Shown here one piece after another: positions 3,261 to 39,069 of a DNA stretch of 55,007 nt. This DNA comes from Cyanophora paradoxa CCMP329 (taxonomy: Eukaryota > Plantae > Glaucophyta). A program made the position numbers and the translations under genes. Every line of letters begins with the position of its first letter. Within the stretch, counting starts at the first letter, position 1. The notes beneath the pieces were generated by a model that had not been told where the DNA came from, searched no databases, and worked only from the letters and a program-made list of their open reading frames with translations. The stretch is taken from contig QPMI01000334.1 in assembly GCA_004431415.1 (NCBI GenBank), positions 1 through 55,007 on the forward strand. The letters are read 5' to 3'.

Positions 3261-3313
3261 GTGGGGAAGCCTGCAGATGCTCGCTCTGTACCGTAGTACT
3301 CTTGCATAGATAT

Positions 3314-4042: not shown

Positions 4043-4074
4043 CTGGGTTACTGGGACATGTGAGCGCCCGGATG

Positions 4075-9645: not shown

Positions 9646-9748
9646 GAACGCTCAGCCTTTTCAAGAAGAAGAAGAGGTTTCAACAGATGACTAACCTACA
9701 CGAAAAGGGCTGATCATGAGCTACACGGTTCTTGTTCTTGAAAAAAGA
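9646..9748 (+). repeat. ~100 bp direct repeat, copy 1
   Basis: GAACGCTCAGCCTTTTCAAG...GTTCTTGAAAAAAGA is near-identical to 15776-15876. Confidence 0.95.
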
Positions 9749-9859
9749 AGGTTGAAAGGCTAGACGGTTCAAAGGTTGAAATAAGAAGAGACTGCGGTTC
9801 AAGAAGGTTGAAATAAAAAGAGACTGCGGTTCAAGAATATGGTCTGCGACGGCTGGATC

Positions 9860-10781
9860 AGTGAGAGCGAATCAATTGCAAGCCAATTGGAAAAAAGCAC
9901 CACCCCTGCCTGTACTGGTGCGGCTTCTTGACGCCACCAGCAGCAGGACCAGAACGGATAGCTCGGGAAGAGTATCTGCAGCTATTCTCGTCGAGGTACG
10001 GGACAAGTGCGACTTCTGGCCACTCGGCACTCTTGGTGACGTAGTAGTATCCATGCCGGAAGTCAGCCTGCAAATGAGCAGCGTCGGATAACTTGCATGA
10101 GCTCGCACTGCAGCGCCTCGCACCGTCTGGCTGATCTGCTCGAAAAGCTTCTCGCACTCGTCGTAGTAGAACAGTCGCAGATCCTGCACGGCCACTCCGA
10201 CAATGCCGAGCGTTCGAATCGCCTCGTGCAACAAGGCCGCTGGCCAGTTGTTGGCCGGGTCTACTGTCACTCACACGGGCCCTGTGCGCGCGAGGTCAGG
10301 GGTCGACTTGATACGCGGCGCGTCGGCTCGACTACGATCAGGCTCATAACGTACCGGTTGTGGTTGTTATCCCGGAGAAGCTGCAGTCCCCTAGGATCAG
10401 AACTCCACGTCGTTCGGAGTTCGACGGGTCCATGTCGAAAGTCTCCCTGTTGAACCGCCGGATGAGCGCTGTCATTGCAGAGCACAGAAAGTCCCAGAGA
10501 AGAATACAAGTGCACGCCAGCCGGTGCCAGAGGCGTGCGCTGAGAGCCGACGGCGGCGGGGCGGGGCCCTGTTCGGGTGCCGGGAGGTCCAGCACGGCAG
10601 AGCGCGAGTATTTCCCAGAGTCCGATACTATATTAGGCGCTTCCCGTCGACTCTTGACCTGGGCTGCCTTCTCTAGCTCCTGCTGCGTCGCTCGAGCTCG
10701 TCGGGCCGCCTCGATTCTGTGCTTCTGATTGTTGCCCCGTGGAGCATTCGCCATCCATGTGATCTCTTCGTCCTCCTCCAT
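9860..10781 (-). CDS. Multi-exon hypothetical protein
   Basis: Protein-like segments separated by GT..AG introns: MEEDEEITWMANAPRG..., FNRETFDMDPSNSERRGVLILGD, VDPANNWPAALLHEAIRTLGIVGVAVQDLRLFYYDECEKLFEQ. No family recognised. Confidence 0.5.
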
Positions 10782-11334
10782 GGTAGTGTCGGCGGGCTCG
10801 GCCCGCCTCGGCGGCCTCCCCAAAGTAGGGGTACGCCCACCCCACGCCAGCACAATGTAGTCGGAGAGGAGAGGAGAAGTCCACAAGTCCGCAAGTCCGG
10901 AAAGTAGTCGGCACGATGTAGTCGGACCACGCAGATCGACTGGTGATGTGCTGTGCTCGCGCACAGTTGATTGGTGCGCTTTCAGCCTCTCTGAGGGCCT
11001 CTTAGAGCAAACAAGCTCTGCAATAACAGCAAGGTCGCAGCAATAACAGCGGCAACAAGGACAGCGGCAACCAGAAGATTCCTCGTTGTCTTTCGTCCAT
11101 CTTCCCACAATGGGAGTGCGCTCGAGCGCTCTTTACGAGGAGTCAAAAGCCAACGAGTCAAGTTCGCCCTCCCCTCCCTTCCTGACGCTCAGGGCCTGAC
11201 GGCACTAGCTCTCTGCAGAGCATTACGTGCTGCGCAAATGCGCTCAGGGCCTCGGCCTCTTCCTCAGGAAAGATTGCTGGGGCGTCGGCGCTCGCCGGCT
11301 CTCGGAAGCAATTCTATTCCTGACCGCCGCCAGT

Positions 11335-12211
11335 ATGGCGGCGATCCTCTACGCGCGGAATGACAAGGGCAACCTGCTCCCAGCCAATCAGCTGCCTTAC
11401 CGGACGCTGTCTATGGCGATCAGCCCTGGCGCCGCCGTTATCGTGCCTTTCGAGCACGCCGCGTTCCCGGCTGAGAGCCTGGTATCCCAGAAGGGGCGCC
11501 CTCTGCCGCACGTACCGAAGTTGGGAGAGCCGATCGTCATGCTGGAGGACCGCCTGCATCCGTACATGTGGACGCGCCGCACGCTGGTCCGCGCGCGCAG
11601 CGCCGGCGTGCGCGCGGCGAGCGTCGCTGACCGCCCGCGCAGCCCAACGGGACCTTCGAGTTCGAGAAGCTGGCGACCAGCGAGTACGCAATCGACAAAG
11701 ATTTCTACGTCGTGGAGGGCGGGGAAATCGTGCCTGTGCGCGGCTGTATCTCGGCGCCGCGCACCGCGCCATGCCTGCCGCCTCTGATTTACGGCTTGGC
11801 AGATGCGGGAAGAGGCTTCGATCACGGCGACCACAACCGCGGGACTCGGCGCGTACGTCAACGACCTGGCGATGGACGAGCACACCGATGAGGGCTCCTA
11901 CAACCAGCGGGAGAGCAATGAGTTGACAGCTGCCTACGCAGTCATCTTCGGCGGCGACGACCAGCACAAGCTCCGGCCGGTCAACGTGGCGGTCGTCCCG
12001 CGGCTCCCCATCGGCCCGGGCCAGCAGGTCTCGGTCGCCTACGGATGGCCGTACTGGTGGGCCGACTCCTCCATCTGTTTTTCTTTTTCACCCTCTCGGA
12101 TTGCGCCTGACGTCCGTAATTAGGAAGGACCACTTCAAGGCAATCTTCAGGCGCAGCATGAAAGCCGTTACCGCCGCGCTCCGCGTGCCAAAGCTGCCAC
12201 GGGCGTTGTAG
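11335..12211 (+). CDS. Stand-alone SET-domain protein (putative lysine methyltransferase), about 4 exons
   Basis: C-terminal SET signature GLGAYVND...NVAVVPRLPIGPGQQVSVAYGWPYW (compare INH...A.RDI.xGEELxxxYG..YW). Introns at ~11587-11642, ~11730-11802 and ~12057-12123. Last exon KDHFKAIFRRSMKAVTAALRVPKLPRAL*. Confidence 0.7.
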
Positions 12212-12435
12212 GCTGCTGTCTCCCGTCACCCTTCGTCCTGCCCCCTCCCTCAGCTATGTCAAGCCCTCTCCCTCCCTTCTTCTCACACCAATACTCAAAC
12301 CTGCGTGGAACTTGTGTGCCTGAGCAGCATGCATGTTGCACATTTTGGGTTTCGAAAGGTTTAAAAAGAAACAGGAGAGATGGAGCCGATCATGGAGGGT
12401 GGGATGATTTGCTGGAGGGGAGGAACCATGATGCT

Positions 12436-13529
12436 TCAGGCGAACACCATATAGTTGGCGGTGTCGGTGCAAAGGGCGTAGCAGGAGATGGAGTCGATGA
12501 GCCACTTGGAGGTGACGATGGGTGCGGTCTTGAAGAGCTCCTGTACTTGCAATTGGGGCCCCAGCTGGAAGGGCCGCAGCAGCTCCTCGGTATCCACAGC
12601 GCCCTCAGCCCGCACCGTTTCCCGGGACCGTACAATGTAAGCAGCCATCACTGCCGTTTGCGCCGAGTGGCATAGGTCCCCGGGGCATTGACACTGCAGT
12701 ATGCAGCCCGTGGCATAGGTCTCATTGCCTGCAAGATGCAGGACTGAGCCACCCGCGCCCTCAATTAGTTCGACGAGGCTCTTCCACGGGGGTTCGTTCT
12801 CCTTGTTGACCAGGTCTTCGAACGCGCCCCACAAGCAGAACAGAAGCCCGTCGAAGAGCCGCGGCCGCTGCGCCCTGTGTGAGGCAGGCGCGGAGCGGCG
12901 GTGGCGCGGAGCGGACCCCGGCGACCCGATCGGCACGGGAGCGGGCAGGGGCGTCGGTCTGCTGCTTGACGCTGTCGCCCAGCAGCTGGTAGGACTCCTC
13001 GGGCTTCCAGCAGTTCTCCTTGAGGCTTGCCCGGACCCCTGCGGCGCCGCGCCGTGTCGGCGGAGGCGGGGGGGCTAGGGCGGGGCAGGGTGCACAGCCA
13101 TAAGAGACGACGTGGATGCCGCGGGCGACGCCATTGAGGTACCCCGCGGTGCGCGTGCAGAGGCCATCGCGTATCTCGCGCGCCACTAGGTGCGTCACAC
13201 CCTCACTCCACGCTTCAGTCAGCACCGCCCCGCCCAGCTTCGCCACCGCCCGCTTCAGCAAGCTCTGCCGGCGCGGCATGAGCGTCAAGGAATGGGACCG
13301 AGGTGTGCACTCGGGGTGGCGGCACCATCTTGTTCGTGTGAACGGTGCTGGCGAAGATTTTGCGAGTGACGGGTGCAGGGTCCGAGCGCTGGCCTATGTT
13401 GACGGCATGTGTTGAAAAGGGAACTGGGATGGGGGGGGGCGGATGCATGCTTACACTCATGCTTAGGCCTTTTCTTCGAGATGTCGCTGTCACCCTGTAC
13501 TCCGGCCCGCTTTGCCTCGCCCTTGCCAT
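12436..13529 (-). CDS. Tandem BRCT-repeat protein (BRCA1/BARD1-type C-terminus)
   Basis: BRCT1: KLGGAVLTEAWSEGVTHLV...CTRTAGYLNGVARGIHVVSY...VRASLKENCWKPEESY. BRCT2: PRLFDGLLFCLWGAF...LVELIEGAGGSVL...PIVTSKWLIDSISCY. The 5' end is uncertain and may join 13600-15459. Confidence 0.88.
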
Positions 13530-13599
13530 CTCCCGCTGTGACGAACGATCGATGAAAGTTCAGAGATTGAAATACTGCATTCTAATTTCTCATCTCTTC

Positions 13600-15459
13600 G
13601 AGAGTAGAGATTATTTTAGAGATCAATAAACGAAAGGAGCTCGTACAAGAGTTCGTGGAGCTTGAGAAGATGACAGGTGTGGAGGGTGACACTGAAGGGG
13701 AGGGGACAGGCCGAGAAGAAGAGCTCTCGTGGGGTGAGGGTGTGGACCACGGGGATGGGAGAGAGGGCTTGAGTGGCAGAGATGGAAGACCTGTCCCTGT
13801 CGCTTTGCTGTCACGAGGTCAAGTAGCTCAAGCAACAGGGCGCGGAAAGGACCTTGGGATGCCATCTCAAAATCAAGCTGGGAAGATGGATACTCTTTAC
13901 TGGAGTAGGACCTGATAGCAGCGTGCAGGGGCGAAGCGTTGGTGAAACATCCTTGTGTCCCTGCAAATGAGGATAAGCCAGGTTTGAGCCACTCGGGCCA
14001 TTTTGAAAGGCTCTCGCCGCTGTTGAGGCCCGGTTCAGAGGGAGAAATCGAAGAAGTCTTGGAAGCAAGGACGAGACGCAAGGGAGGGAAGTCGTCAGAA
14101 GTCATCTTCAGAATAGAGGCATTGGGACGGAGCACTGCGTGATATTCAGTTGGCTATAGAAATGGTAAATTGCGAGATGCTGCCTCCTCACACCAGCTGG
14201 TGAAGATGCATTTGCTACCACCTGCTGACAAATGTTCTTGAGGTATTGATGGCCGCCTGCTGCCTTTTAGAAAGAAACGGGGAAAGACGAAATTGAAGGG
14301 TCTCACGAGGTGATTGTAACTCCGGCTGGGTCTCCTCATCTTGTTCCATACCTTGTTGAAACAAATTTCCTGCAAATTAACATTCAAGAATCTTCTAATT
14401 TCCCCTTAGCCTGCATCTCATGTGCACTTGGCTTTTGAGCGTGACATGTGGGGGTTTCTGCGACTCAGGATGTCAGGAGGTAGAGCTGCCGTGCGTGCCG
14501 GGGAGCCGTACTCACCCTGGACCTTGTCGGAAGAGGCGCAAGAAGAAGCACAAGAAGAAGAACGCCGAACTCCCTCCGGCTGGGTCTCCTCCTCTTCTCT
14601 CATGCGGAGGGAGGCCGCGGGTAGCGGCATCCCCCCCTCAGAAGCGGGCCTCGGGTTTGAAGGCTCTGCAAAAGTTTCAATCCCACTCACAAATTCTCCA
14701 ATAGCCACTCAGCCTGCATCTCGTGCGTACTTGGATTACGATAAAGGTTGAGGTCGTATTCTGCGACTCACGATGTCAACAGGGGGATATGTCCGAGACA
14801 GGAAGCCAGGACTTTCTCGCCCTTGAAACAAGGCCCACCTTCATGTACGGAGCAGGTAGCCGAGTGAACTGAAGAAACATGTTAGTTCGCAGAATCTGCG
14901 ATGGGCATCTGAATGCCACGCACGATCCTTCAAATAGCCACCCATCCTGGTGTCACAGGCTTCCAGGTCCTCATGATCAATGTCCTCCCCTTGCAGGATC
15001 TTCTGAACGACACTCTGCAACTTCACAATGATAGAATAGCCCTCGAAATCCACCCTAGCAGGCATGGCATGCCCCGCCTGCCTCGCTTTGTCAAGCATTG
15101 CGATGAGTTCGTCATGCTGCAACTCGATTAGCGGCGTCCGGCCCGCGCACGCAACGTGAACGAACGGTCTTGATTTCGTAGCGCTCGAAGTCTTCGATGA
15201 GGATCCTTAAGCCGGCGTTCACTGAGCGTCCGCCGGTAACGCTCAGAAAACGATCGTGATGTTTCTCCGTGATTTTCACCCTGCCACTCATCAAGCGTAT
15301 GTCAGCGTGCATGAAGTGAGTGCCAAAAGTAACGGACTGCCGGTCAACAGTCTTGGCGCTGCGGTCACCCTGCTTGAAGCGATCGTGGGCGTTTCGCAGG
15401 TAGATGTCCGGTTCGGGGCCGGGCTTCTTCTTTACGGAGCTCTTCCTATCCTTTGCCAT
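13600..15459 (-). CDS. Multi-exon hypothetical protein with SQ/TQ motifs, possibly the N-terminal part of the BRCT gene
   Basis: Exons MAKDRKSSVKKKPGPEPDIY...FERYEIKT and LQHDELIAMLDKARQ...GGYLKD, then low-complexity exons with EEETQPE, DEETQPE, SSQ and MASQ. Confidence 0.5.
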
Positions 15460-15775
15460 GCTGCACTTGTGCGTGTACGCGCGCAGAACCAGTGCCGCGG
15501 GGCCGCTGGAAGCTATGAGTGCACATCAAGGACGTGAAGGCGCATGCGCAAAGTGGGGCTTGCTGGGAGCGGGCACGCGGAAGGACCGTAACGCGAGGCA
15601 GCTCCTGCACGCACGCGAGGCTGGTGCTGCAAGACGTTTGCCGAAAGGAGTTGTACCCCACCAGGCCAGAACAGTGAGAACGCTGAGGTCTGTGGACACT
15701 GAGGTCCGATCTAGCTCTATCACTATCTCTCACTTTCTTACTATCTCTATCTCACTGGCCCGACCAGCTCTCCCT

Positions 15776-15876
15776 GAACGCTCAGCCTTTTCAAGAAAGA
15801 AGAGGTTTCAACAGATGACTAACCTACACGAAAAGGGCTGATCATGAGCTACACGGTTCTTGTTCTTGAAAAAAGA
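15776..15876 (+). repeat. ~100 bp direct repeat, copy 2
   Basis: Matches 9646-9748 and abuts the 698 bp repeat. Confidence 0.95.
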
Positions 15877-15877
15877 T

Positions 15878-16875
15878 TGCCGCGCATTATTTCGCAGGGC
15901 GAGTCGCCATAATTTTTGGAGGGCTTTTTGGGGCCTTCCCGCGCTCCAGGGCGGGCGAGTGGAAGCCTGGCAGCCGGTAGTCACGTTCAGACCCTATCTG
16001 AGCCGCTACTGAATGACTCGCATCCGTCGGAATTGGCGCCAGAGAGGCACGGGCGGATTCGGAATCGGCTCTCAAAATTGATCCCGGGAAGAACCCCATT
16101 AGGGAGTCGTTCTCCCCCGGCGCAGCGCCCGGGCGCCGTAAGCTTCGAGACAAATACTCTGCATGTACATCCAAGGGCACTGAAATTGTTTCAGGGCGCT
16201 CGTAGGTGCCACTAAGTCATTAACATTTGATGAAAGGTGCAGACTCATGATCACGTGCAAAAAATTGCAAGCTCGCCGCGCCAAGCTTAGAGGCACCAAT
16301 GAGCCTGTCGGAACGTCAGATTCGGATTCCTCGCCTTCAAAATGGGCGGGGTGCAAAATGTGGGTCAGTCGCGGGCCGGGACGACGCGGCGGCATCAGGT
16401 AGAGGGCGCTCTTGGAGCCTGCCAGCCTGCCCCCGAAGGGCCTAATCGGCAAATACCACCAAGGAAAGCATCTTATCCGACAAGTTAGATCCGGGCGTGG
16501 GGGCGGCCCCAGGGGTTCTCGAGGGTGCCGGATTTGATTCCAAGGTCGTCCAAGGCCGAAAGTCAGCCCGTAGCGCGCCGCGCATTATTTCGCAGGGCGA
16601 GTCGCCATAATTTTTGGAGGGCTTTTTGGGGCCTTCCCGCGCTCCAGGGCGGGCGAGTGGAAGCCCGGCAAGCGGTAGTCACGTTCAGACCCTATCTGAG
16701 CCGCTACTGAATGACTCGCATCCGTCGGAATTGGCGCCAGAGAGGCACGGGTGGATTCGGAATCGGCTCTCAAAATTGATCCCGGGAAGAACCCCATTAG
16801 GGAGTCGTTCTCCCCCGGCACAGCGCCCGGGCGCCGTAAGCTTCGAGACAAATACTCTGCATGTACATGTACATC
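15878..16875 (+). repeat. Tandem repeat, 698 bp period (~1.4 copies), same family as the palindrome spacer
   Basis: GCCGCGCATTAT..TCGCAGGGCGAGTCGCC at ~15879 and ~16577. Duplicate ORFs 15887 and 16585. Confidence 0.95.
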
Positions 16876-16906
16876 CGAGAGCACTGAAAAAACATCGAGG
16901 GCAATC

Positions 16907-19720
16907 CTACATCCGTGTGTTTGGAGAGGCGCCCTCGGAGTTGACCTTGAGGTTGTTCCCCAGCGTCAGCACGATGCAGTATCTGCCGGAAAAGGGTAGG
17001 CCCGGAGTGATCATGAGCTTGCGAGGCGCCGCTGCGGCCGCTGCGGCGGCCACGGGGCGAGCCCAGCGCACCGCCCCTCCGTGTCGTCGTCCTCCACCAC
17101 GCCGTGCTTCAGGAAGTGGCCCTGCCGAAAGACAAAGCGTGGGCCGCCGCCGACCTCCCCGGACGGAGCCAGAGGCGTGGCCGTGCGTGGGTGCGCACCC
17201 GAATGAAAACGACGTCGCCATGGCGGAGCTCGACGGAGATGCCGATCGCTGGGAAAAGGAGGCGGTGCAGGCGCTGGTCGCAGTCGCCGTCGGGGTGGAA
17301 GTAGATGAGAGCCGCGTACCCCTCTCGCGCATCGTTCTCGTCGCAGTGCGGATCCGTAATCCTGCGCCGGGGGAAAACGTCGGCAGCTTGTGGGCCGACC
17401 GGGGCCGGACAGGGGTACGGAGGGGCGGAGGTCGGTGGCGGGGGGCGGCTCACTTGTCCGGCCCGTTCATCCACTGCATCGCCCAGAAACCTGCACACGC
17501 ACGGATGAGGGGGAGCCCGGCCGCGCCCCCCGGCCCCGCCACCCCCCGAGGGCGGCCCGGCGGCGCACCGTAGTTGTACGGCTGCTGCTCGAGCAGCCGC
17601 AAGCTGATCTGGGCCATCTGGCAGGCGGCCCTCAGGTTAACAATGCTGAAGGCCGCGATGAGGTACTCCAGCAGCCCCGCGAGGTACCAGTTGAAGAGGT
17701 GCAGGCGCCGGTTCGCGTTCGTATCCCGCCCAAACTGCTTGTTGATAACCACCTGAGGTGCGCGTGAGCGCGGGCTTTCTGGCGCGCGGGGGCTGGGGGT
17801 CGGAAATCGCGGTGGGCAACGGGCGGGCGCACCGGCGTCGGGACCGTGGCGCTGAGGCGCTGGCAGCCCGTGGTGACCCGATCGCCGCGCCCCCCCTCCT
17901 GCTCCTCCGTGCCGCGCCCGCGCCCCCCCTTCTTCTTCTTCTTGGGCTTGGGCTTCTCTTCGGCCTGCGCGAGCCAGCCCTCGCGCTCGAGCTCCGCCAG
18001 CTTGGCCCGCATGACGTCGAGGCTGCCCGTCTCCAGTGCCACCTTGGCGGCCTCGTCCGCAGCGTCCAGCAGCACCTGATCCTGCACGCGTGACCGACCC
18101 ACTCCATCAGCATCGCGTCCGCCCGGCGGCGGGGACTGCGGGGTAGCGGCCGGGCAGAGGCGGGGGAGGAGGGCGCGGGGGCGGCGCACCAGCTCGGCGT
18201 TCTCGTGCGGCGTCCCCTTGGAAGCAAAGGGCATCGCCACCGAGCCGCAGGCAACGACGGCCGCGATGCGCTTGATGGCGATGCCCTCCGCATCCCAGAA
18301 GAGGTCGGGCAGGTGGGCGGCGGCAAGCTCGCCGCCGAGGACGAGGCGAGTGAACGTCCCGCGCCCCATCACCGCGTCGTGCTTCCGCTCCTCCCTCCCC
18401 GGCAAGCCGGGCGGGAGGGGCTCCAGGCCGTGGCAGAGGGCGCCCTGCGTGCCGGGAGCTCGACGGGGGCGCGCGTGGGGCGCGCGGAGGGCGTGCGGGG
18501 GGGCGGGCAGGACGGACCTGGGCCCGCAGGATCTCTTGGATGAAGCGCGTGTCCACCTCGCCGCCGCCGGGGAGGTTGCAGCTGAGCACGAGCGTCTGCG
18601 GGGGCGACAAGGCGCGCTTTGCCACCACGACCGTGTGCAGGGGCCCCTGCGGGTTGTCGAGAAAGGCCCCTTGCAGGGCGCACAGCGCCCACTCGGCGAC
18701 GGGGCGCGGCTCGAGCCTCTGCCCCGACCGCAGCTGCAGCTCGGAGCCGTAGAGCTCGGCCTCGCGCGCCGGGGGCCCGAGCATCCCCGGGGGTACGATC
18801 CCGCGAGGCAGCTGCGGAGAGGGAGGCGCGTTCATGCCGGGGCGGCAGCGGGCGGGCAAGAGGGGCCGTCTCGCACGTAGATCGTCTTGCCGTCCCAGCG
18901 GTGGGCCCCGAAGGACGGGAACCCGTAGGTGTACCGCGCCAGGAGTGCAGCCTTGGCGAACGGATCTGCGGCAGGGCGTAGGGCGGGCTGCATCGCTGCG
19001 AGCGCGGGGTGAGGAGGGGCAGGCGGACTCTTTGTGTAGAGGGGGCACGCCGGGCCCGGGAGCGCGTTTGACGCGCGCCTCTGCCCGCCGACCGCCAGCC
19101 CCGCCGCGCGTTTCTCGTTGCGCTGCCTCTCGGCCTCAGCGCGCCGCGCCGCCGCCGCCGGGTCGGCCGCGAGCGCCTCTGCCGCGGCGGCGCACAGGGC
19201 CGCGTCGCCCGCGCCGTCTGCCGACGCGGCGGCGGCCCCGGGCGGCTCCTGCGGCAGCTCCTGCTGCCGACGCTCGCCCCTGCGCGGGCGGACGCGCCGC
19301 GGGGCCGCCTCCGCCTCTTCCCGGCCCGGCCGACCGCCGGGGCCGGGGCCTGCGCAGCGCCGGACGGCTCCGGCTCCCCGGCCAAGGCCGCCTGCGCGTT
19401 CTCGCGCATCCACTTCTGCAAGGCCTGCGAGGCAATGCCGCGGAGCCTGGCGGCCGCCTTTCTCGCAGCCTTGGTAGCCTTGGCCAGCTCCGTCAGCCGG
19501 ATCGACTCCAGCCCCGTGCGCACAAGCATGCCGACGCACGAGCCGCCGGGCCCGCCGCCCGGCATGATCTTCGGACGTGAGCTTTACCTGCGGATTCAAA
19601 GGCGAGGCGTTGGCGCGGGCGGCCGCAGGGCTTGAGCGAGTGGCGGCGAGCTTTCGATATCGGTCGCGTGGCGCGTGGACCGCTCCGCGCACCTCTTCTC
19701 CGCCGCACCTAGAGCCCTAG
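16907..19720 (-). CDS. TET/JBP-like 2-oxoglutarate/Fe(II) dioxygenase (catalytic domain ~16907-17760) with a long GC-rich N-terminal region
   Basis: In-phase splicing gives ...YNYG-FWAMQWMNGPDK-ITDPHCDENDAREGYAALIYFH...LLFPAIGISVELRHGDVVFIR-GHFLKHGVVEDDDTEGR-YCIVLTL. This supplies HxD (17340-17348), the distal His (17104-17106) and the 2OG-binding Arg. Upstream exon connectivity and start are uncertain. Confidence 0.8.
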
Positions 19721-20026
19721 ATGAGCCAGCGGGCGTCTGCGGTGCGCCCGCAGCCGCCGGGTCTGTTGCTGCGGTGAACCGAGTTCCGTCGCGGACTCGC
19801 AGCTCGCCGAAAAACGTGACGGGTTTTGCTGGTGCCGAATCGAAAGGTGGTCAGGTTTTCACGCGACTGTCGCGACGTTGAGCCCGACTACTCGGCTTTG
19901 ATCGTCGCCACAGGGATTCTTCGCGGGTATACGTACCCCCCAGGCCACCCCGCCACCCGTCACCCGGGCCACCCGGCCCCCGGGTCACCGGTTGCAGCTG
20001 CGAGTCCCGCGAGCCGCCGGCGAGCG

Positions 20027-23247: not shown

Positions 23248-23304
<57 letters not shown>

Positions 23305-27130: not shown

Positions 27131-27391
27131 GCACCGCGTTTGATGCTAGGCTTCAGCACGATTGCCGCGGAACCCGCGGCAAGGCTCAGGAGTCTGGAGC
27201 CAGGGGCTCAGGACGACGAGCTGCGCTGGGGGTGGGGTACGCAAAATCGTTTCAAGCTGTGACGGGCCAGGCAGCAAGCAGCAAGCCACGAGACGAGTGG
27301 CTGCGCGAGCAGCTGCTCTTACGAGCTCAACATGGTCAGTACGCATGCACACACACACGCATGGTATAGAGCGCAGACTGACGGCCGCAGC

Positions 27392-28770
27392 AGAACTCTC
27401 GCAGACCGACGGGCTTCGGGAGCCCGTTCGAGTTCCCCCGGAGAGCCCTTCCGGTCTCAGAGGTGAGAGCTGCATCTCGATACTGGCTCTGCTGCAGGCG
27501 GCCCAGTCCCGTGGCAGAAGTTTCAGGAACGCGATTCCAACTATCCCCCTCGTCCCCAAGAGAGTGCTGCTCTGCAAACGCCTGGGCCCCTGGCTGCTTC
27601 ACGGGGCAACGCGGTCCGTGCGCTCGACACACGTTCAAGCTGGTCTCTGATGTCCTTCCAGGAATCCCCGAACCCCACCACTGTGGCGGCAAGTACTGAC
27701 CTGCATTCTGTTCTCGTCCTCCGTGCTAATCGAGCCGATGAATGCAGCTTCCAGCTTGGGATGCTCGTGCACTCAGAACCTCGTCCCGTCCGAACTCTAG
27801 CAGACCGACGGGCTTCGGGAGCCCGTTCGAGTTCCCCCGGAGAGCCCTTCCGGTCTCAGAGGTGAGAGCTGCATCTCGATACTGGCTCTGCTGCAGGCGG
27901 CCCAGTCCCGTGGCAGAAGTTTCAGGAACGCGATTCCAACTATCCCCCTCGTCCCCAAGAGAGTGCTTCTCTGCAAACGCCTGGGCCCCTGGCTGCTTCA
28001 CGGGGCAATGCGGTCCGTGCGCTCGACGCACGTTCAAGCTGGTCTCTGATGTCCATCCAGGAATCCCCGAACCCCACCACTGTGGCGGCAAGTACTGACC
28101 TGCATTCTGTTCTCGTCCTCCGTGCTAATCGAGCCGATGAATGCAGCTTCCAGCTTGGGATGCTCGTGCACTCAGAACCTCGTCCCGTCAGAACTCTAGC
28201 AGACCGACGGGCTTCGGGAGCCCGTTCGAGTTCCCCCGGAGAGCCCTCCCGGTCTCAGAGGTGAGAGCTGCATCTCGATGCTGGCTCTGCTGCAGGCGAC
28301 CCAGTCCCGTGGCAGAAATTTCTGGAACGCGATTCCAACTATCCCCCTCGTCCCCAAGAGAGTGCTTCTCTGCAAACGCCTGGGCCCCTGGCTGCTTCAC
28401 GGGGCAATGCGGTCCGTGCGCTCGACGCACGTTCAAGCTGGTCTCTGATGTCCTTCCAGGAATCCCCGAACCCCACCACTGTGGCGGCAAGTACTGACCT
28501 GCATTCTGTTCTCGTCCTCCGTGCTAATCGAGCCGATGAATGCAGCTTCCAGCTTGGGATGTTCGTGCACTCAGAACCTCGTCCCGTCAGAACTCTAGCA
28601 GACCGACGGGCTTCGGGAGCCCGTTCAAGCTCCCCCGGAGAGCCCTCCCGGTCTCAGAGGTGAGAGCTGCATCTCGATGCTGGCTCTGCTGCAGGCGACC
28701 CAGTCCCGTGGCAGAAGTTTCAGGAACGCGATTCCAACTATCCCCCTCGTCCCCAAGAGAGTGCTTCTCC
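27392..28770. repeat. 399 bp tandem repeat, ~3.5 copies
   Basis: GAACTCT.GCAGACCGACGGGCTTCGGGAGCC at ~27392, 27791, 28190 and 28589. ORFs repeat every 399 bp. Confidence 0.97.
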
Positions 28771-28937: not shown

Positions 28938-30680
28938 ATGGACATTACTCTTAAATCGGTGCCGATTTGTGTTTCATTACACCTTCGGCATGTGCCTCAC
29001 CACGTGCCGCAGCCCTGTACTTCACCTGCTCAGCAACGGAGCGCACAGCAACAAAGTCTAGCTACTGGGTGCACAGTTGAAGAGAACAGCAGGCCATCGA
29101 AACGTCAATGCTGTGCATCAGCCTCCTCGACGCAGCCTCTTCAGACAGGCCTGCTCAGCCTGTCATCTGAACTGCTTGCCTTGATTGTAATGCGCCTTTC
29201 ATCTGCTGATAAACGCTCATTTGCTCTCGTGTCGGATGCAACACGTCGTGCTGTCAGCGAATGCGAGGACCAGCTGCGCCTCAGTAAAGACTTCATGGCA
29301 TGTGGTCGTTTCCACGAGTACATCCTGGGGTTGCGACGCCGCGGCCAGCTTACACGTCTGACAATCAGTCCGAATGGCCGTCATGTACTGGCAAACCAGA
29401 CTGACCTCTATCTACGTGTTGAAAACTATAGACAGTCCACCCCGCAGTACATGCATTCGGCTTGCTACCGCCTCGATGAGCGGGGGGACCATGAGCCAGT
29501 TATCAACGATGACGGCACCGCCATGTTGGTCAAATGCACCCTCGACGACATTGACAGTGAGCACTTCTGAATAATTGTTGCAGGGACTGCATGCTCATCT
29601 CTTCACAAACACAGATACCTGTGCCTCCGAAGACATAAGTGGCTGCAGCGAGGGCTCCCGGGATGCAGCCACGTTTTCTGTTTTGCAATGGGCCAAGGCC
29701 ACCGACAGCGACTCTGAGGACAGTGACTCCGAGCGAGAGAACCCCCCAAGTGACTACGAAAAGAACGACTATCGAGACACGTATGTACCTGAGCCTTAGC
29801 TTTGGTCTTCTACGCCGGCATAACACGGCTCTTTCTTATCTCCAGGGTAAAAGTCATCAAGGTTGGAGGCGCGAAGAGCCTGTTTTCCACTGTCACGCAA
29901 GTTCGGACTTGCATTCCCCCTGTGCTCACCCGGAGTGGAGCGTACTCGCTGTACTCCAAAGAAACCGGCGATGAAACCGCCATGTTCCTCAGGAATATCA
30001 CCAAGAAGACCGACGTCCGTGTGATCGGTTCTCCAGCTCTGGACACGCTTGCAGCCAGTTGGCCTCCAGAGAAAGCATCAATGAAGCCGAACACCGAGGG
30101 GACTTTGCTCCTGATTCTATTCAAGACACGAGAGCGAAATGGACCTGGCAGTTTGGAGCAACGAGTGATTGTCAACCCCGAGACTGGTGAGGCGCGTGAT
30201 GTGGATCTTGGTCTCGACGAGAGATGGGCTCCCGAAGCTTTCCCGTATGGGTGCGGCTCTGGATGGCTCATTGTGTTTGATGCAAACCTTCACACCAAGG
30301 CCACATACGTCTCAAGAAAACAACTGATTGACCTTGTAGCGTTCTTCGTCCACAAGGACGGCCGCACAGAGCCCGTCAACACTGTGCGAAGCAACAGATT
30401 TGATCAGTTCAGGTTCTTCACAGCTCATGACATGATCCTGTTCCTTCTGCGCCTTGAGCAAACTGGGCTGGCTTCAAGCTTAAACAGAGCAGCCTCGTTC
30501 GGTTTCTACAAGCTGGAGCATGATCAGCTGAAGTACATCGCAATGCCCCTTGTGGACTGGCTTCCTGGTGCATTTGCATGTGCAGGAAGCGGGCGTTGCA
30601 TTGCTTTCGACTACTTCTCGAAAAAGCTCATTTGCTGGGATGGAGGAATGGAAAACATACCACCCAGAATCCACGTTTAG
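28938..30680 (+). CDS. F-box protein with an acidic linker and a beta-rich C-terminal domain
   Basis: F-box-like LLSLSSELLALIVMRLSSADKRSFALVSDATRRAV, acidic DSDSEDSDSE, and a long terminal exon (29846-30680). Confidence 0.7.
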
Positions 30681-31336: not shown

Positions 31337-31850
31337 CTATCGCTGCCCGGCTCGAAAGTGACCTGCGGCAAGTCCTAAGCCCCACGTGGACAGCGAGAAA
31401 ATCCTGCCACCAACCTTGCGGGTGTTGAAGTCGCTGATGCGAACCTTGCGCACCTTCCGCAGTTTCTAGACGAAAATTATCAAAAAGAAGGCAAAAGAAA
31501 CTCACGCCTTTGACCTCGGCGATGACTCCCGCGACAGCGTTGCGCTCGCTGAGCATGTGAGTCACGGGCTCGTACGTGTTTGACGGCTCGCCCTCAGCCC
31601 AATGCACGATCGCCATCCGCTTACGGTCGCCGGCTTTCGGATCGTAGCGAATCCCATCGATTGTTTGCACTGTGTAGGTCGCGGCCTGCGAACGCATTCA
31701 ACTGCAGATGCATTGAAGGAAAAATTCAAGAACGATGAACCTCATCTTCGGAAGATTCCGCGCGAGGGGGAGTCTCTGACCGCAGCAAACGGCGGGGCTT
31801 TTTCGCAGCGCCCGAAGGACCGGCGATCACGCCGCCGGGCGAAGCATCAT
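31337..31850 (-). CDS. Small protein with a divergent chromodomain
   Basis: TYTVQTIDGIRYDPKAGDRKRMAIVHWAEGEPSNTYEPVTHM resembles chromo Y.VE.I...R....YLVKW.....TWEP..H. Upstream exon AAKKPRR...AESSEDE. Confidence 0.5.
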
Positions 31851-32205
31851 CCGAGATTGGCGAGGCGTTACGCAGGCGATTGCGGCCTGCAAGAGAAAAG
31901 TATGTCCGCGGCAAGGAAGTGGACCCGGCCGGGAAGGAGGAAGAGGACAAGGGCACCTGACATTACTGGACACCGTGCGGGTGGTGGCAGAACTCCAAAC
32001 AACTGGGTGGTGACGAGTGGGAGCTGCGGGTCTATACGTGACTGTACCCTCACACCTTCCGCCACTGGACCGCCAGGACACGCCTGGCTCCGCCAATATG
32101 GTTTTGATTGACCATGCCGTTCAGCATGTACATGCCGCAGTGAAGGTATATATGGAAAACGTCGCACCTCCGACCGCACGGCGCCGCGCTTGACCTTCTG
32201 CACAG

Positions 32206-33052
32206 ATGTCGCATGGCTTGCGCGGCACTCTCGGCGTTCCGCTCGAATCGGCTATTCAGAAGGGTGAAGTCGATGTGCATCTTCCTGTGAACAAGCTCAG
32301 CTACGCGCAAAGCAACGCAATTCGGTCTGCGAAGTGCGCGGTCTCTTGCGCGTGCATGCGCATCTCGCCGTCATCGCCGCAAAGAGCTCCGATTGTGCTT
32401 GTCGCCGCAGGTTCGAGGTGGCCAGGTTCGGCAAGCGTCTGATCGAGTGGTTCCCGAAACGTGCGGCTAGTGCGGTGGCGCCTAGCTAGCTAGCTGCGCT
32501 TGAATGATTGCGTGCGCAGGTTCGCATGCAACTCTGAGCATCTCGATTGCGATTCTGCACCTGCAGACGCCCATCATCACCCCCATGCATAACGATCTCG
32601 TGCACGAATATCCACTTTCCGGAAATGTGCTCTCTCGAATTCGCGGCAGTTTGTTTAGCGCAGGATCTCATCAGATACGCGGAGCCGTTTCAGAACATGC
32701 AGCAGCGCCAGCAGATCGATGTTGTCCCGCTGCGACCTCCTTACATGATCGTCTTCATCTACGAGGAGGGCGAGCGAGTCCCGGACTACGGACAGCTTGA
32801 GCTGGACAAGGAGCTGGAGGCCGAGCTCAGCTCGGTGAAGGCCATGTGGGAGGTCCGCATCTTTCCCAGTCCGCTTCAATCTCACTTGACATCCAGCAGG
32901 AGCAGCGGGATTTAAAGGAGGAGGAGACGGAAGACGAGGAAGAGGATGAGCGTGAGCAGGAGGAGGAAGAGGACGAGGGGGAGCCGCAGCAGCAGCAGCC
33001 ACAGCCACAGCCACAGCCAGCTGTTGCTGTTGTGGACTTAACGAAGGAGTAG
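32206..33052 (+). CDS. Multi-exon hypothetical protein with acidic/Gln-Pro tail ending in a SIM-like VVDLT
   Basis: Exons ...LIRYAEPFQNMQQRQQIDVVPLRPPYMIVFIYEEG...AMWE and EEETEDEEEDEREQEEEEDEGEPQQQQPQPQPQPAVAVVDLTKE*. Start uncertain. Confidence 0.55.
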
Positions 33053-33440
33053 GAGTTGGGGGGGGGGGCAGGTTCTTTGTGACCGCTTGCACGCATTGTT
33101 GTAAATAGTTCTGATCAATGTGTGTAACGTTAACTAGCTATAGTACGTTCAGTTAAGCTTCTTGCACAGTCTACCACGCCTTGAGCTTGACCATGTGCGA
33201 TTGGTTGCTAGCTGTGGTCAGACTTCTTATGACCACTGGCCAAATTGCAATTGCAATGCACATGCACGTGAGGGGCCGCTATTCTCGCAGCAGATGTGCT
33301 GCAAGGCAGAGGCTAGTGCTGCAGATTTCGTTGTTAGGTTCGAATTCACACTCCAAATGTCTAGGCTAATGTCACAGGTTGGTGCTTGGAGAAATATGCT
33401 TGGAAGCTAGCAGTGCTGGCGCCATGAATATGTAGAGAGC

Positions 33441-35412
33441 TCAGTGGACGATGATGTACGCATTCTTGGGCTTGAGCTTTCCCTCCAGGGCGAGGAACGA
33501 GATGCCTGCCTGCTCTGCCTATTAGGCCTGATCTTGATGAGAATGACCACTTCAACTCACCCCGTTGTTCAGCGGGCCCAACTCCGGGACAGACTGAAGC
33601 ATGCGCTTCCCCATGTCTGCTTTCACGAATCCGAATCCGTGGTACTTCGGAAGTACCCCAGACTCCTCAAGAACCATGCCGTAGTCCTGAATCTGATGGC
33701 GAGACATGTGAGCCTACAGAGCCCGAAGCCCCAAAACCAAGCATAACACTCCACCGTCTGGAGGGCGGTGCAGGCATCATGCATGGCTGCATTGCCTTTG
33801 ATCGCCCAACCACCTCCAGTCGTTGGCAGCAAAGCGATGGTCTCGAAGATGATCTTTCGCTGAGACGACGATGCTGACGATGATGGCGATGCCTGAAAAG
33901 GAGTTTGAAAAGGATATGAAACGGAAAAAGACATCAACGCGAAGAGAGACTTGCCTTCGGGGGCTTTGGCTGTGTGGGGACTTTGGCTTCGGCCTGACTT
34001 GGCCCCTGCTCATAGACGTCAGAGGAGGGAAAGTTCATCCCCAAGAACTGCATTTCCTTGCCTTGCAGGGGCGCTTGGCATCAACAGGCGCTGCTGCAGG
34101 GTTGCCAGACGCGTCCCTCTGCGAAGCAAGACTTTACATGTGAGCAAATGTCGAGCACAGGTCATCTGCTTGCCTTCCGGCTGCTGGACTGCGACGAGGA
34201 AGATGGCGAGTCTTCGAATTCGAAGATGCCCGTCATAATCTTCACTGTGAAATCCAGCTGTGCCTTAGGGTCGAGATCCTCGAACCCCCCAAACTTGCTA
34301 GCAGGGAACATCGCCTGGCGTGATGTGTGCTGATTGGGGGACTCAGATTCGATGTATGGCAGAATTTGGAAGAGACTTCGAACCTTGAAGCACTTAGCGT
34401 GCCAGTGCATCGGCTTCTGCTTGATGAAAGGAACACAATAATGGGGCTTGAGATTGCCCACTTGTTCCAAGAGCGTGTTCACTTGATACTTGTCGACGCT
34501 TCATGCATGTAAGCTTGGAGGCATAATGGGGTGAAAGGCAGATCGCACCGCAGTTGACCCTTACAGAAACGCTCGCCACAGCAGAGGCACGTTGCCGTTG
34601 TACTCATCTGGGAGGCCTAGTCAGAAAGGGCTCTACGGTGATTATGCTCACGCGGCTACGCACCTTCTTTGCCTGGCTGACGCCGAAAAGGGACTGCATG
34701 CGCGTCCCGCTGAATGATGTCAGCTGGGGATTGACTCCTGTGAGCGAGGCCTCCGCTTCGGCGTACACCCACATCCTGGAGCATCAGTCAAGAGGAACAT
34801 CTTCCTATTACGCGCACTTAGGAGCGTAGCCTAGCAGGATACACGCTTAGCGCACGATCGACGACACGATCGCAAAGAATCTGTGACGCGCACGGTACCA
34901 AGAGCACGTAACGGCAGTAAGTCACTCGAATGAGCGCACGGCGCGACGGCAAGGTCAGGTGCTGCGAACGAGGAAGCGATGGGAGCTGCACCAAAAAACG
35001 ATCCGTGAGCTCCGGGAGCTGCTTGCATGACACAAAACGGCTACGAGCTCACTGGTTTCGAGCTCATCCCAAGCTCTGGACGATCTCTTGCTTGGATATC
35101 TCGCGTTGTAAGCGGGCTTCTCTCGCTGCAGGGGGTACAACTCCAATTTCAAAGCCTGGAGACCGCAAATCCTACGCCAGCTGCACGTAGAGGCGGAAAG
35201 GCACGCGTACCACGCGTGCCACGCGCATCAGCACGTCCAGCGGTCCATCTGAACTCCCGGTCAACAGAATTTCGGCGTGCCAAAAAAGAGAAGCGCACGA
35301 AAAAGCAGGAAGCGAAGGATCCGGACGGTGCGCTCAGCGTTGTTATGCATTGCAATCACGCTTTCTGAACGCTCATTCCGCTCCTGCACGCAGTTCCTGC
35401 TGAAGAACTCCA
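33441..35412 (-). CDS. Multi-exon protein with a PARP-type zinc finger
   Basis: Spliced ...SQAKK-MSTTATCLCCGERFCKGQLR-...KPMHWHAKCFK-AMFPASKFGGFEDLDPKAQ matches zf-PARP CxxC...KGxLR...HxxC...GFxxLxxxxQ (~34260-34690). Confidence 0.65.
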
Positions 35413-35618
35413 TCGGGGCTGCCAGGACGAGACTTCCGGTGCCTTCGCCCTTTCTACGAGCTCTCATCTCCGCGTTGATCGAAAGAATACGCTTCAGAGT
35501 GGATTCGCAAATTGTTTGCAGGGAAAGTCCAGCACCCGCGCGACCGCGTGGCCCAGCGCGAGGCGAACTTCATCGCACCCGCCGGGCACGGTTTGCGCCA
35601 CGACCCCAACGGCATCAA

Positions 35619-35664
35619 CAGCAGCGACAGCAGCGACAGCAGCGACAGCAGCGACAGCAGCGAC
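35619..35664. repeat. 9 bp tandem repeat (CAGCAGCGA)n between divergent genes
   Basis: About five copies just before the ATG at 35668. Confidence 0.9.
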
Positions 35665-35667
35665 ATC

Positions 35668-38600
35668 ATGGGCAGAAAAGGAGGCGTTGAGTCTTTTTAC
35701 AAGCGCGCTGGAACAGTTGCAGCAGGAAGCGACGGATTTGTCAAGTACGTTTCGACCAGCACGAAGCAGGAGAATGCCAAGCAGATGGTACATTAATTTG
35801 CGTTTTTGATCTGCAATCAACTCCAGGGCTCACGATGTAGCAGGTGGCCATCATTACCAATGATCCAGATAGTGAGTTATTTCTATGATTTTCTCTGAAG
35901 CCCAAAGCTCACGTTTTGCAAATCAGCCGGGAAAGTCGTTTGTTTTTTTGCTGTTTCTGGGGAAGACAGACAGTGTTTCTGGGGAAGACAGACAGCTGTC
36001 GAATGGACTGATTGGCTCAAGGTCGATGAGGCAACGAAGGCTGCTGTTTCTGGGGAAGACAGACAGTGTTTCTGGGGAAGACAGACAGCTGTCGAATGGA
36101 CTGATTGGCTCAAGGTCGATGAGGCAATGAAGGCGGAGCCATTCAAAACCAAGGATATCTACGCGGAACTTGAGAGCTTGGTCTGCCCCCTTGCCCCCTT
36201 CCCTCCCCCCTTCCCCCCCCCCCAATTGAATTCCAGAATCCATTTATTTTATATATTGCAGGCACTTGCAGCCAAGGGAGAAGTCTCGATCGTAGAGCTG
36301 CTGAGGATCCAGCAGGAGTACAATGTGTACCATCACAGTGACAAATCTGAGGACTACAGCGCGAGATTTACCTATCAGGACCTTGTGTCGTGTTTGCAGC
36401 CTTGCTGTATAACATTCCGGTTTGAGGTGTGTCGCCGCCATCTTTTGCAGAACTTCGCCATTTGATCTGTGATGCTGCAGTGCCTTGGCGGGAAGTACGA
36501 CAAGAAGGATGGCTGGGTTGTGGCAAAATCAGGGAACATGAAGGACATCGAAATTCTTGACAGGACAGCCGTTATCAGCCTGACGGATTACGTGACTGAG
36601 CTTCAAATCAACTCCCAACCCTCATCCTCCGTGAGGAAGCCTTTGTTCTGTGGTGCTCTTTATATCGAGAACCCCAATTTCGCGAGAATCGCCATCGATC
36701 ACTTCAATCGCGAGTCGCCTGGTGTTCAGGAGAAACACGTCAAGAAACTGTATGAAAAAAGGGTGAAATTCTCTCTGGCTCTCTGGCAGTTGAAAAGTTG
36801 CTTACTTTGTGCAGTTGAAGGGAAGTGGAGCAGAAAGTGATTCTGAAGATTCTGTGGTTCGGCGACGCTCATGCATTGCAAACCTGCAAAAATTCTCACA
36901 CTGTTGATCAGGCACCGCCAACAGGGAGCCGCAAACGAGGCATCTCCCAGAACCCTCCCACTGCCAATCCAGCACTTCGCGGCTCCCCAGACTTGAACAG
37001 TGTATGTCTGCAAACTTTGCCAACGGTTGCTTGTCTCACTTGCACACAGCCTGTCACATTGAAGCGTCCAGTCACCTATCAATGACCTGACAGTTCTTTG
37101 CCAGTAAAGCGTCCGTCATCTTTCAGTGCTACGTCCCGTCCGTCCCCTGGCCCATCTAGAGGCGTTCCGTCCCCTGGCCCGTCTGGAGGCGTCAGTCCCC
37201 TTCCTGGCCCATCTCGAATTTCTGGTCCATCTGCTCATGTGTGTTGCCACCCTTACATCAGCCTGTGCATTACTTACCTGCACGCAGCCTGCGCCAATGT
37301 CATCATCCCTGCAATTGGCAGTTAGTTTCTTTGATTTACACTGATTTAACGGCTCGAGCTTCTCTGATGGGGCTCGGGCTGCTTTTGAATCAGACCGGGC
37401 TCAACGAGCTTGGCGGAGGATTCTTTGACGTGAGCTTCTGCAAGATGTTGGCTATATTGCAACATGCTTACCTCAGTGTCAGTTCATGAAGGTTGGAAAG
37501 AGCACAAGTCCCATGCACCTATCTGGAGAGCGAGATGCGGTTCATCCGTGCCCACCACAGCCCCCTGGACAGCGCCTTCCGTGCCCACCACGCCCCCTGG
37601 ACAGCGCCTTCCGCCTTCTTCGGTCTGTGAGAGCACTGCACCTTGTTGTATGAGGGCTAACCCTGCCTATAGTCTCGCACTCCAGCAGCTCCAACGCCTC
37701 GCACTCCAGCAGCTCCAACGCCTTGCACTCCAGACCCTCCCACGCCCGACCAGGCAGTCCAAAGTGCTCTAAACAACTACCCTCTGAAGGATGTGTATGG
37801 GGTTCTCAGCAAGGTGTACGTCAAGCTTTCATCTTCCTTTTGTTTGCTCTAATGTGTGATCATTGGTCATATTGCGCAGTGTGATTTCCACTCTTGCGGG
37901 TGCTGCAGCAGCACAGAAGCAACTGCAGGAGCAGCGCAACAAGTCCAGCCAGCTCGAGTCTGAAAACCGCGAGGTGCTCGTGCTCTGTTGTGTTCTGTAA
38001 CCTGTTCTACTTGTGCCTTAGGTGATTCTTCAGATGGCGGCCAAGATGTCCGCTGTAGAGGAACAGAATACCAATCTCCAGGCCCAGGTACAGCTGGCTT
38101 CTTTGGTTGTCCAATTTTTCCCGTGCATTTCCACTCACTTTTACATCAGATGTCGGAAATGAACGAGTTGCACACGCGTTACGACGATTTCATATCTCGC
38201 CATAAGTGCCTATTCTGCAAGGTGGCTCTTTGGATTGTCTAGATACTTTGTCCCACTCTGCACGCGTCCTCACACTGCTCCAGCATCATTTGGCCACCCC
38301 AGCTGCCTTTAGAAAGCTTTTCGTCCAGCTCGACCTCGTTCATTCCAGCTCCCAGATCATCACGTTTTGCTGCACCAAGTGCGGATTGTCGATGCACCGC
38401 GACTGCCTCAACAACATCCAGGAGCTGATTGAAACCAAGAGAATGACACACAAGGAACTCTTGGCATGCTCACAGGGGGGTCTCCATGATTTCTGTCCAA
38501 CCCCGGATTACTGGCCCGACACAGTCCATCTCTGTGCATTCCCGATTGCGCTTTGTGTTGCTGCTCACGCACCACCAACAGTTCAAGCGATCCATGTTCT

Positions 38601-39069
38601 TCAACTCTACTTTTGTTTGTGATGTGGACAACTGTTCCTGCCAGATCAGCGGCTTCGACCTCCAACACCATTTCGAGGAGCACCACGCGGACAAGTACCG
38701 TGAACACTTGAGTCGCCGTGGTGAGCATCCTGTGTCACTGCTCGCCTTGTGGCAATAACGCATCTTGCAGAGAGGGAAGAGTGCGCTCATCCTGCAGAGC
38801 CTGCACCGGAGCTTGTGGAGCCCGCACCGGAGCTTGTGGAGCCCGCACCGGAGCTTGAGTATGGACAGGATCAGGAGGACATGCAAAAGAAAGGTGCTGC
38901 TTTGCCCCTGTGCTCTGCTTGTGCACTAAGACTGGCTTCAGGAGACGAGCCCGGGAGCCAGGGGTCTACGTTTGAGCCATTGCAACCACCTGAAGAGCTA
39001 ATTGAACGACCTGCAAAGACTCTTAGGCTGTCGGGAGACGAGGTGGTGCGCAACCAGGCAGCGGAGTAA
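35668..39069 (+). CDS. Large multi-exon protein: coiled coil + RING/PHD-like Cys/His domain + C2H2/SIAH-like finger
   Basis: AQKQLQEQRNKSSQLESENRE and MSEMNELHTRYDDF coiled coil; CLFCK...CCTKCGLSMHRDCL...C; FVCDVDNCSCQISGFDLQHHFEEHH; EPAPELV x3 tail. May be more than one gene. Confidence 0.55.
35950..36128 (+). repeat. 93 bp tandem duplication with a nested 22 bp duplication
   Basis: CTGTTTCTGGGGAAGACAGACAG units at 35951 and 36044, each internally doubled. Confidence 0.92.

Follow-up and report, generated by a model that had tools for sequence, protein, structure and literature searches.

The interval from 9646 to 39069 of a 55,007-nucleotide stretch of Cyanophora paradoxa CCMP329 (contig QPMI01000334.1; hereafter the window) appears, on balance, to be a probably silent patchwork next to a satellite, made up of at least three adjacent pieces with separate histories. 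The first would be a ~4-kb cassette at 15.9-19.9 kb that holds a TET/JBP-like gene and repeat E and derives by copying from a dispersed family; the second, a unique 6.2-kb segment with SET1 and a BRCT gene, lying between 103-bp direct repeats; the third, a run of orphan genes at 21.5-39 kb, low in GC and mildly depleted in CpG.

A preliminary description had read these 30 kb as the cargo of one giant mobile element. That reading is not supported: no mobiliser, termini or target-site duplication was found, the TET cassette is repeated but the flanks tested are unique, and SET1 has no detected paralog. Support does exist for genes of mobile-element type, an expanded and dispersed TET family and a repeat-rich setting.

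Table 1. Features located in the window, in order of position.
Feature	Position	Strand	Description
Fold-back palindrome	1-6815		arms 1-2723 and 4096-6815, with GC-rich ~40-bp minisatellite
Repeat E copy	3406-4072	+	diverged (75%); palindrome centre
103-bp direct repeat, copy 1	9646-9748	+	98% to 15776-15876
Putative spliced gene	9858-10782	-	no recognised domain; approximate bounds
SET1	11335-12211	+	SET-like, four exons, 228 aa, EukProt g8567
BRCT gene	12436-15460	-	3'-terminal tandem BRCT domains (12436-13290), BRCA1-like
103-bp direct repeat, copy 2	15776-15876	+	partner of 9646-9748
Repeat E	15879-16889		~700-bp unit and partial tandem copy
TET/JBP-like 2OG-Fe(II) dioxygenase gene	16907-19529	-	11 exons, ~600-626 aa, EukProt tig00001387_g8569
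One or two putative genes	19925-21342	+	no recognised domain; unique contig; approximate bounds
F-box gene 1	22078-25180	+	leucine-rich C-terminal exons
Chromo 1 and SET2 (probably one gene)	25523-27030	-	~342 codons, nine stop-free exons joinable through GT/GC-AG introns; 5' end uncertain
399-bp tandem array	27391-28769		3.5 copies, 98%
F-box gene 2	28940-30680	+	last exon 290 aa, unrecognised; two junctions uncertain
Chromo-like gene (chromo 2)	31337-32140	-	degenerate chromo-like exon 31506-31685
Putative acidic-tailed gene	32200-33052	+	no recognised domain; approximate start
zf-PARP-like CCHC finger gene	34162-34783	-	finger over exons 34607-34549, 34498-34462, 34416-34384, 34314-34171
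Putative spliced gene	35010-37085	+	no recognised domain; internal 93-bp duplication; approximate bounds
Zinc-finger gene	38037-39069	+	cross-brace-like finger and C2H2-like finger
Arm-derived copy	40065-40527		465-bp part of palindrome arm, 73%
Satellite	40531-55007		121-124-bp unit (124-bp at start 40531)

Flanking repeats

The block does lie, as first described, between a fold-back palindrome and a diverged copy of its arm that adjoins a satellite; all three were located (Table 1). The palindrome arms are 98% identical across their outer 1.66 kb and 93% overall, and the 1.4-kb spacer between them holds a copy of repeat E. The satellite is CpG-depleted (observed/expected ~0.27); its array contains one block in inverted orientation and an intronless ORF, for the latter of which viral and metagenome scans found no relatives. 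The left bound originally proposed, 9646, is the start of a real repeat, but because this 103-bp repeat has its partner at 15776 it bounds 6.2 kb and not 30 kb.

The left segment

SET1 is assigned by the similarity of its ESM features to SET clusters (score 0.95; recognition 2289, a little under the tool's mark of 2300), and its nearest feature clusters are minimal SETs, viral or eukaryotic. It has Asn-Asp where Asn-His is usual. Pfam and PDB profile searches returned no match, viral and metagenome scans no relatives, and a protein search of the annotated Cyanophora models no paralog; the predicted fold (pLDDT 32) is too low in confidence for use. In the neighbouring gene, BRCT 1 exceeds the Pfam cut-off (E=1e-5) and BRCT 2 is matched at E=0.02; the top PDB match of the pair is BRCA1 (E=0.03). 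The BRCT exons and the unrecognised exons up to ~15460 are probably a single gene, because g8567 and g8569 have just one gene number between them.

A dispersed TET-like cassette

The TET/JBP-like protein keeps the 2OG-Fe(II) ligands His-x-Asp, His and Arg. Its Pfam Tet_JBP match has E=0.015 (14.9 bits versus a cut-off of 34.9), and paralogs reach E=2e-4. TET of Naegleria or Coprinopsis ranked first, weakly, in a PDB profile search and in both fold searches (Z 8.2 versus 7.6 for the next; Foldseek E 1e-3; below cut-offs), the predicted structure being of low confidence (pLDDT 45). The metal and co-substrate ligands are in place; the substrate that the protein oxidises would most likely be a methylated DNA base, e.g. 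5mC. Searched with the TET alignment, viral and metagenome sequences yielded no relatives.

Relatives of the gene occur on eight other Cyanophora contigs, with full-length identities of ~37-84% and 94% in the catalytic region for the nearest two. No paper on this expansion, seen on nine contigs, was found in the literature searched. Homology with the paralog contigs extends to ~19911. Repeat E, whose tandem parts (15879-16185 and 16577-16889) are 96% alike, is matched by many variant contigs, as is the ~4-kb cassette as a whole (15.9-19.9 kb), which is a repeated unit. In putative RNA runs the paralogs are spliced at the predicted introns, and the RNA pieces carry paralog differences; 10 of the 16 best-supported substitutions are synonymous. 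On the patchwork reading, members of the dispersed family at other loci are spliced and evolve under purifying selection.

The cassette is demonstrably repeated, and its carrier may be a rolling-circle or other DNA transposon. Inspection by eye and a hairpin scan found no clear Helitron termini (5' TC, 3' hairpin-CTRR or Helitron2-type) round the cassette in the window. No carrier transposon was identified, a point that counts against the patchwork.

The flanks of the cassette are of a different kind. Unique error-free contigs cover ~12963-15826 and 19646-~23278, one of them crossing the right junction of the cassette, and depth is that of a single contig at 14950-15347, 19925-20123 and 20323-20521. 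No second copy of the flanks (14.95-15.7 kb and 19.9-20.5 kb) was found at 80% likeness. Copy number was tested for 14.95-20.9 kb and SET1; together with one homolog locus (L001), which has the TET gene alone in common with the window among unrelated neighbours, these data lean towards scattered paralogs and away from the co-occurring clusters expected of a single element.

Genes of the right block

Chromo 1 is CDY/HP1-like (Pfam E=1e-12). SET2 has a partial Pfam match (E=6e-4), and its best PDB match is DIM-5 (E=0.4). The two are probably parts of one gene, with a predicted in-frame splice path between them; Cys-rich pre-SET and post-SET regions are absent from the exons between chromo 1 and SET2 and after SET2. 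A homolog search with the SET2 exons was blank, a weak result because it failed to recover even the window's own SET2 model. The F-box matches have E=6e-4 and 4e-4, and a tandem duplication of 729 bp (23723-25180, 99%) disrupts the 3' end of F-box gene 1. At least five further putative genes in the block are without a known domain. A possible PHD-like finger at 32540 was considered and rejected, since that position is probably intronic and no search matched it.

The chromatin and ubiquitin toolkit named in the preliminary description is retained in part. Support is firm for chromo 1 and BRCT 1 and weaker for the TET/JBP-like domain, both SETs, BRCT 2 and both F-boxes. Chromo 2 is unconfirmed, with no HMM match and, by eye, the third aromatic-cage residue missing. 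The zf-PARP-like CCHC pattern over four exons is recognisable by eye alone, exon-wise PF00645 searches being blank. The supposed RING is an unclassified zinc finger, ambiguous between RING, PHD and C1: a weak Prok-RING match (E=0.0015) stands beside C1 and PHD matches alike. No housekeeping gene had been recognised, and this holds: none was found, and tRNA and Rfam scans of the window were empty.

Composition and transcription

Base composition shifts sharply across the block. GC3 is 0.91 in the TET gene, 0.83-0.85 in SET1 and the BRCT gene and 0.58-0.72 in the right block; CpG observed/expected ratios across the parts of the block are 1.07 versus 0.77-0.92. The GC content of the Cyanophora genome is 67.6% (PMC6704402). 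The stretch from 21.5 to 39 kb is compositionally uniform, low in GC, mildly CpG-depleted and gene-dense, with short introns and mostly open frames. So uniform, dense and open-framed a stretch resembles the interior of one element and counts against the patchwork.

Of the words in 11.2-19.9 kb, 3% occur in putative RNA runs; ~29% would be expected were exons present. The locus looks untranscribed, although the runs are only guessed to be RNA and silence cannot be proved from contigs. In Cyanophora, repeats are methylated and 21% of genes are silenced (PMC12344493).

Origin of the interval

TET genes travel passively among 11 transposon lineages (PMC12730594). Where a genome silences repeats by CpG methylation, selection may favour mobile or virus-like elements that bring along TET, SET, chromo and F-box genes, and pieces of such elements would pile up where insertion is tolerated. 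Because pieces accumulate at such sites, a functional bias could arise without one element carrying the full set.

It is rather unlikely that the whole block, or just the low-GC half on the right, is what is left, without its mobiliser, of a single giant element of tyrosine-recombinase or virus-like type that carried a chromatin/ubiquitin toolkit and into which the TET cassette and repeat E were inserted later. Similarly doubtful is that the block is the stranded interior of an undescribed giant capsid-less Cyanophora element family with chromo-SET, BRCT, zf-PARP and F-box genes, which the mobile TET cassette joined later. A remnant would fit the stretch at 21.5-39 kb, with its uniformly low GC, closely packed orphan genes and short introns, the likeness of SET1 to minimal viral SETs, and the giant-virus-derived regions reported in Cyanophora (PMC12344493). 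Palindrome-arm sequence on each side of the block also favours it, but this flanking repeat is just 465 bp at 73%. The preliminary description had noted no transposase or integrase; exon-wise Pfam and PHROG scans of ~70 ORFs and exons likewise gave no transposase, recombinase, RepHel, primase/helicase, polymerase or capsid. Domain searches were run exon by exon or with database proteins, and small spliced exons could be missed; protein paralog searches reach only those models that are annotated and fall in a certain range of lengths. The remnant also lacks ends, and its tested flanks are unique at 80% likeness: self-BLAST, a repeat finder and end-to-end alignments found no terminal inverted repeats or target-site duplication bounding the 30-kb block. 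At candidate ends, no inverted match exceeded shuffles apart from a short 9-mer cluster near 9750/20800. The inverted 9-mer clusters (9748-9812 and 20772-20797) exceed chance and were rejected as element termini; they are read as a 3'-end motif because the sequences around them do not align and each cluster closely follows the 3' side of a putative gene, in that gene's sense orientation.

Ordinary host genes are an improbable explanation. Most of the genes would then be single-copy chromatin or repair genes (SUV39-like chromo-SET, BRCA1-like BRCT, F-box) near a satellite by chance, with the TET cassette alone mobile. Single-copy flanks, canonical introns, open frames, the HP1/CDY-like chromo 1 and the weak DIM-5 match of SET2 agree with this. 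Against it stand degenerate motifs, the lack of housekeeping neighbours, a GC content far under the genome mean, apparent silence, and the lack of a close homolog of the SET1 or SET2 exons outside Cyanophora (the SET2 search missed its own model).

An intact, active selfish island of ~30 kb whose products act together to rewrite the marks on DNA and histones, as originally proposed, is very improbable: the recognisable domains are functionally biased and the TET catalytic ligands intact, but mobiliser, termini and a second copy of the tested flanks are lacking, composition is mosaic, the locus appears silent, and the model is already contradicted for 14.95-20.9 kb. Least probable of all is that misassembly of a repeat-rich contig partly accounts for the arrangement. 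The fold-back with which the window opens, several tandem duplications at 96-99% and the lack of a single contig spanning the tested stretch would allow it, but all 20 DNA-type runs contain 11.2-19.9 kb (86-93% of words, possibly all from one strain), the right cassette junction is bridged by a unique contig, and the palindrome arms are diverged around a 1.4-kb spacer.

Comparison with known systems

The predicted chromo-SET2 gene resembles the H3K9 methyltransferases SUV39H1 and Clr4 in having an N-terminal chromodomain with a full aromatic cage and a C-terminal SET; it differs in lacking Cys-rich pre-SET and post-SET regions, and its DIM-5 similarity is weak (E=0.4). SET genes are carried by the Phytophthora transposons HarbingerS and MuDR (cited in PMC12730594). 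These too place SET genes amid mobile DNA, but neither SET gene of the block lies within a delimited element or was seen as multi-copy. Cyanophora giant endogenous viral elements (PMC12344493) share with the block orphan, low-GC, probably silent gene clusters, and SET1 is like viral minimal SETs; in contrast, the block has no viral hallmark gene found and its genes are intron-rich.

The TET-like protein shares with Naegleria NgTET1 and Coprinopsis CcTET the double-stranded beta-helix fold (model pLDDT 45) and the aligned His-x-Asp...His...Arg; the Asp five residues past the first His in NgTET1 is also present. Identity is 15-23%, and the His-x-Asp motif has Cys where most paralogs have Arg.

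Without mobiliser or ends, and apparently silent, the locus is a poor model of an anti-silencing element; the transcribed paralogs are better. The TET/JBP-carrying DNA transposons of fungi (KDZ, Plavaka, EnSpm, hAT, IS3EU, Harbinger, Helitron; PMC12730594) are alike in their expanded, dispersed TET/JBP genes amid repeats, their probable passive transfer and a proposed escape from 5mC silencing. The Cyanophora locus differs in that no transposase, TIR or TSD was found and the host is a glaucophyte; its family is a distinct expansion below the Pfam Tet_JBP cut-off. The analysis points to a Cyanophora-specific TET-like expansion (nine contigs) in a CpG-methylating, repeat-silencing genome, which would extend the biology of TET as transposon cargo to glaucophytes and provide a candidate enzyme family.

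A repeated TET cassette in a mosaic block

The TET gene (16907-19529, minus strand) is repeated together with short flanks, and its neighbours are excluded from the repeated unit. This is so because unique, difference-free public contigs lie on both sides (one over about 12963-15826, another from 19646 to about 23278), while many variant contigs lie at 15.9-19.9 kb, most densely over the ~700-bp repeat E. Contigs were aligned to 14950-20900 at 80% likeness and the copy-number test is limited to that stretch; contig depth is not copy number, therefore the reading rests on where contigs lie. A search with exon 1 of SET1 (the SET gene at 11335-12211) matched only SET1 itself; a homolog search for SET2 (within 25523-27030) was blank, which is weak as a negative.

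Base composition across the block is a mosaic. GC3 is 0.91 in the TET gene and 0.83-0.85 in SET1 and the BRCT gene. In the 21.5-39 kb block it falls to 0.58-0.72; GC there is 53-57% and CpG is mildly depleted. About 70 ORF scans gave no hit to a transposase, recombinase, RepHel or viral hallmark, although exon-wise scanning can miss a spliced mobiliser; no element termini were found around the block.

TET product, relatives and expression

The 11-exon TET gene encodes a 2OG-Fe(II) dioxygenase, most likely of TET/JBP type; this is based on ligand alignment and fold rankings. In an alignment with Naegleria TET, which is the best PDB profile match though not a significant one (E=0.54), its His-x-Asp, distal His and co-substrate Arg line up. 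In fold searches with a low-confidence predicted model, the best match is NgTET1 in VIA-align (Z 8.2, rmsd 4.5, 152 aligned) and CcTET in Foldseek; the Pfam Tet_JBP score is under the cut-off. The product may act as an "eraser". Exon for exon, the gene matches the EukProt protein tig00001387_g8569 of Cyanophora paradoxa; SET1 is g8567 on the same contig.

Relatives occur on eight other Cyanophora contigs. The two nearest are 94% identical in the catalytic region, and 10 of the 16 best-supported differences are synonymous. A more distant intron-containing homolog (64% DNA identity; 1286-3745 of L001, a 5.3-kb contig from run ERR10034898) has a similar exon layout; its neighbours are unrelated, with none common to the window.

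The TET family appears to be transcribed: paralog differences occur in the RNA contigs listed for the gene, and their splice junctions fall at the predicted introns. The window locus itself looks silent, with the caveat that contigs are no proof of missing transcription; in four putative RNA runs, 3% of the sequence words from 11.2-19.9 kb are present, against an expected share of about 29% with known exons present and 12% for SET1 and BRCT alone.

Domains and flanks

The preliminary description placed an epigenetic toolkit beside a satellite, an observation that is confirmed in part. Its fold-back palindrome (1-6815), arm copy (40065-40527) and 124-bp satellite are all present, and two domains are firm: chromo 1 (Pfam E=1e-12, CDY/HP1-like) and BRCT 1 (E=1e-5; best PDB match BRCA1). 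Support is moderate for BRCT 2 (E=0.02), SET2 (E=6e-4, partial), both F-boxes (E=6e-4 and 4e-4) and SET1, whose language-model features match SET clusters, many giant-virus, at 0.95; an HMM search of SET1 gave no match. The four-exon zf-PARP and the degenerate chromo 2 are seen by eye only, and the "RING-like" zinc finger matches RING, C1 and PHD about equally, all weakly. Eight canonical introns could join chromo 1 and SET2 in frame; since the exon-joining solver picks stop-free paths, a single gene is a plausible model, not proof. Exon-wise searches leave at least five further putative genes in the block with no recognisable domain.

The arm copy spans only 465 bp at 73% identity, versus 96-99% for the window's internal duplications. 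Position 9646 does not open a ~30-kb block; it begins a 103-bp direct repeat whose pair (9646-9748 and 15776-15876, 98% identical) encloses only 6.2 kb. This unique segment, 9646-15876, has the appearance of a circular DNA inserted through a single crossover.

Repeats and other features of the window
Feature	Position	Strand	Remarks
Repeat E	15879-16889		~700-bp unit, tandem and dispersed; variants also present in putative RNA runs; may be non-autonomous and of rolling-circle type
Repeat E copy	3406-4072		75%; palindrome centre
9-mer clusters	9748-9812; 20772-20797		3 copies each, the two clusters oppositely oriented; a putative gene lies upstream of either one; observed 6, expected 0.3
GC-rich minisatellite	1661-3254; 4096-5150		39-41 bp; palindrome arms; could encode an Ala/Arg/Glu-rich repeat protein
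Direct and inverted short repeats	7620-7815		SalI sites, period ~13; after AT-rich stretch
Recent local tandem duplications	23723-25180; 27391-28769; 35949-36134		729, 399 and 93 bp; 96-99%; two of three within genes
Inverted satellite units	48897-49526		5 units, inverted versus rest of array
Intronless ORF	47461-48444	+	327 aa, 47% GC; inside satellite; resembles glycosyltransferase 2 by eye; Pfam gave nothing significant, no viral relatives found

Origin of the block

The C. paradoxa genome (99.9 Mb, GC 67.6%) has abundant short introns (PMC6704402). Its repeats carry CpG methylation, as do 21% of genes; these are mostly silent and include giant-virus-derived regions (PMC12344493). Such a methylating host would favour anti-silencing-type cargo in mobile DNA, and pieces of that cargo would accumulate beside the satellite. 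This is the explanation we prefer, with moderate confidence; the TET cassette is repeated and its tested flanks are unique.

The interpretation in the preliminary description is thereby supported in part: the cargo is of mobile type. It is rather unlikely that the block is the remnant of one giant element; with no mobiliser or termini found in the scans, unique tested flanks and composition breaks, a single element is unsupported. Ordinary host genes are a still less probable origin. The active island first proposed is very improbable, and an assembly artefact hardly credible.

On the features that could be examined, the block does not qualify as a KDZ, Plavaka, Helitron or recombinase element. 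In fungi, 11 transposon lineages carry TET genes as passive passengers, and oomycete transposons with SET cargo have also been described (PMC12730594).
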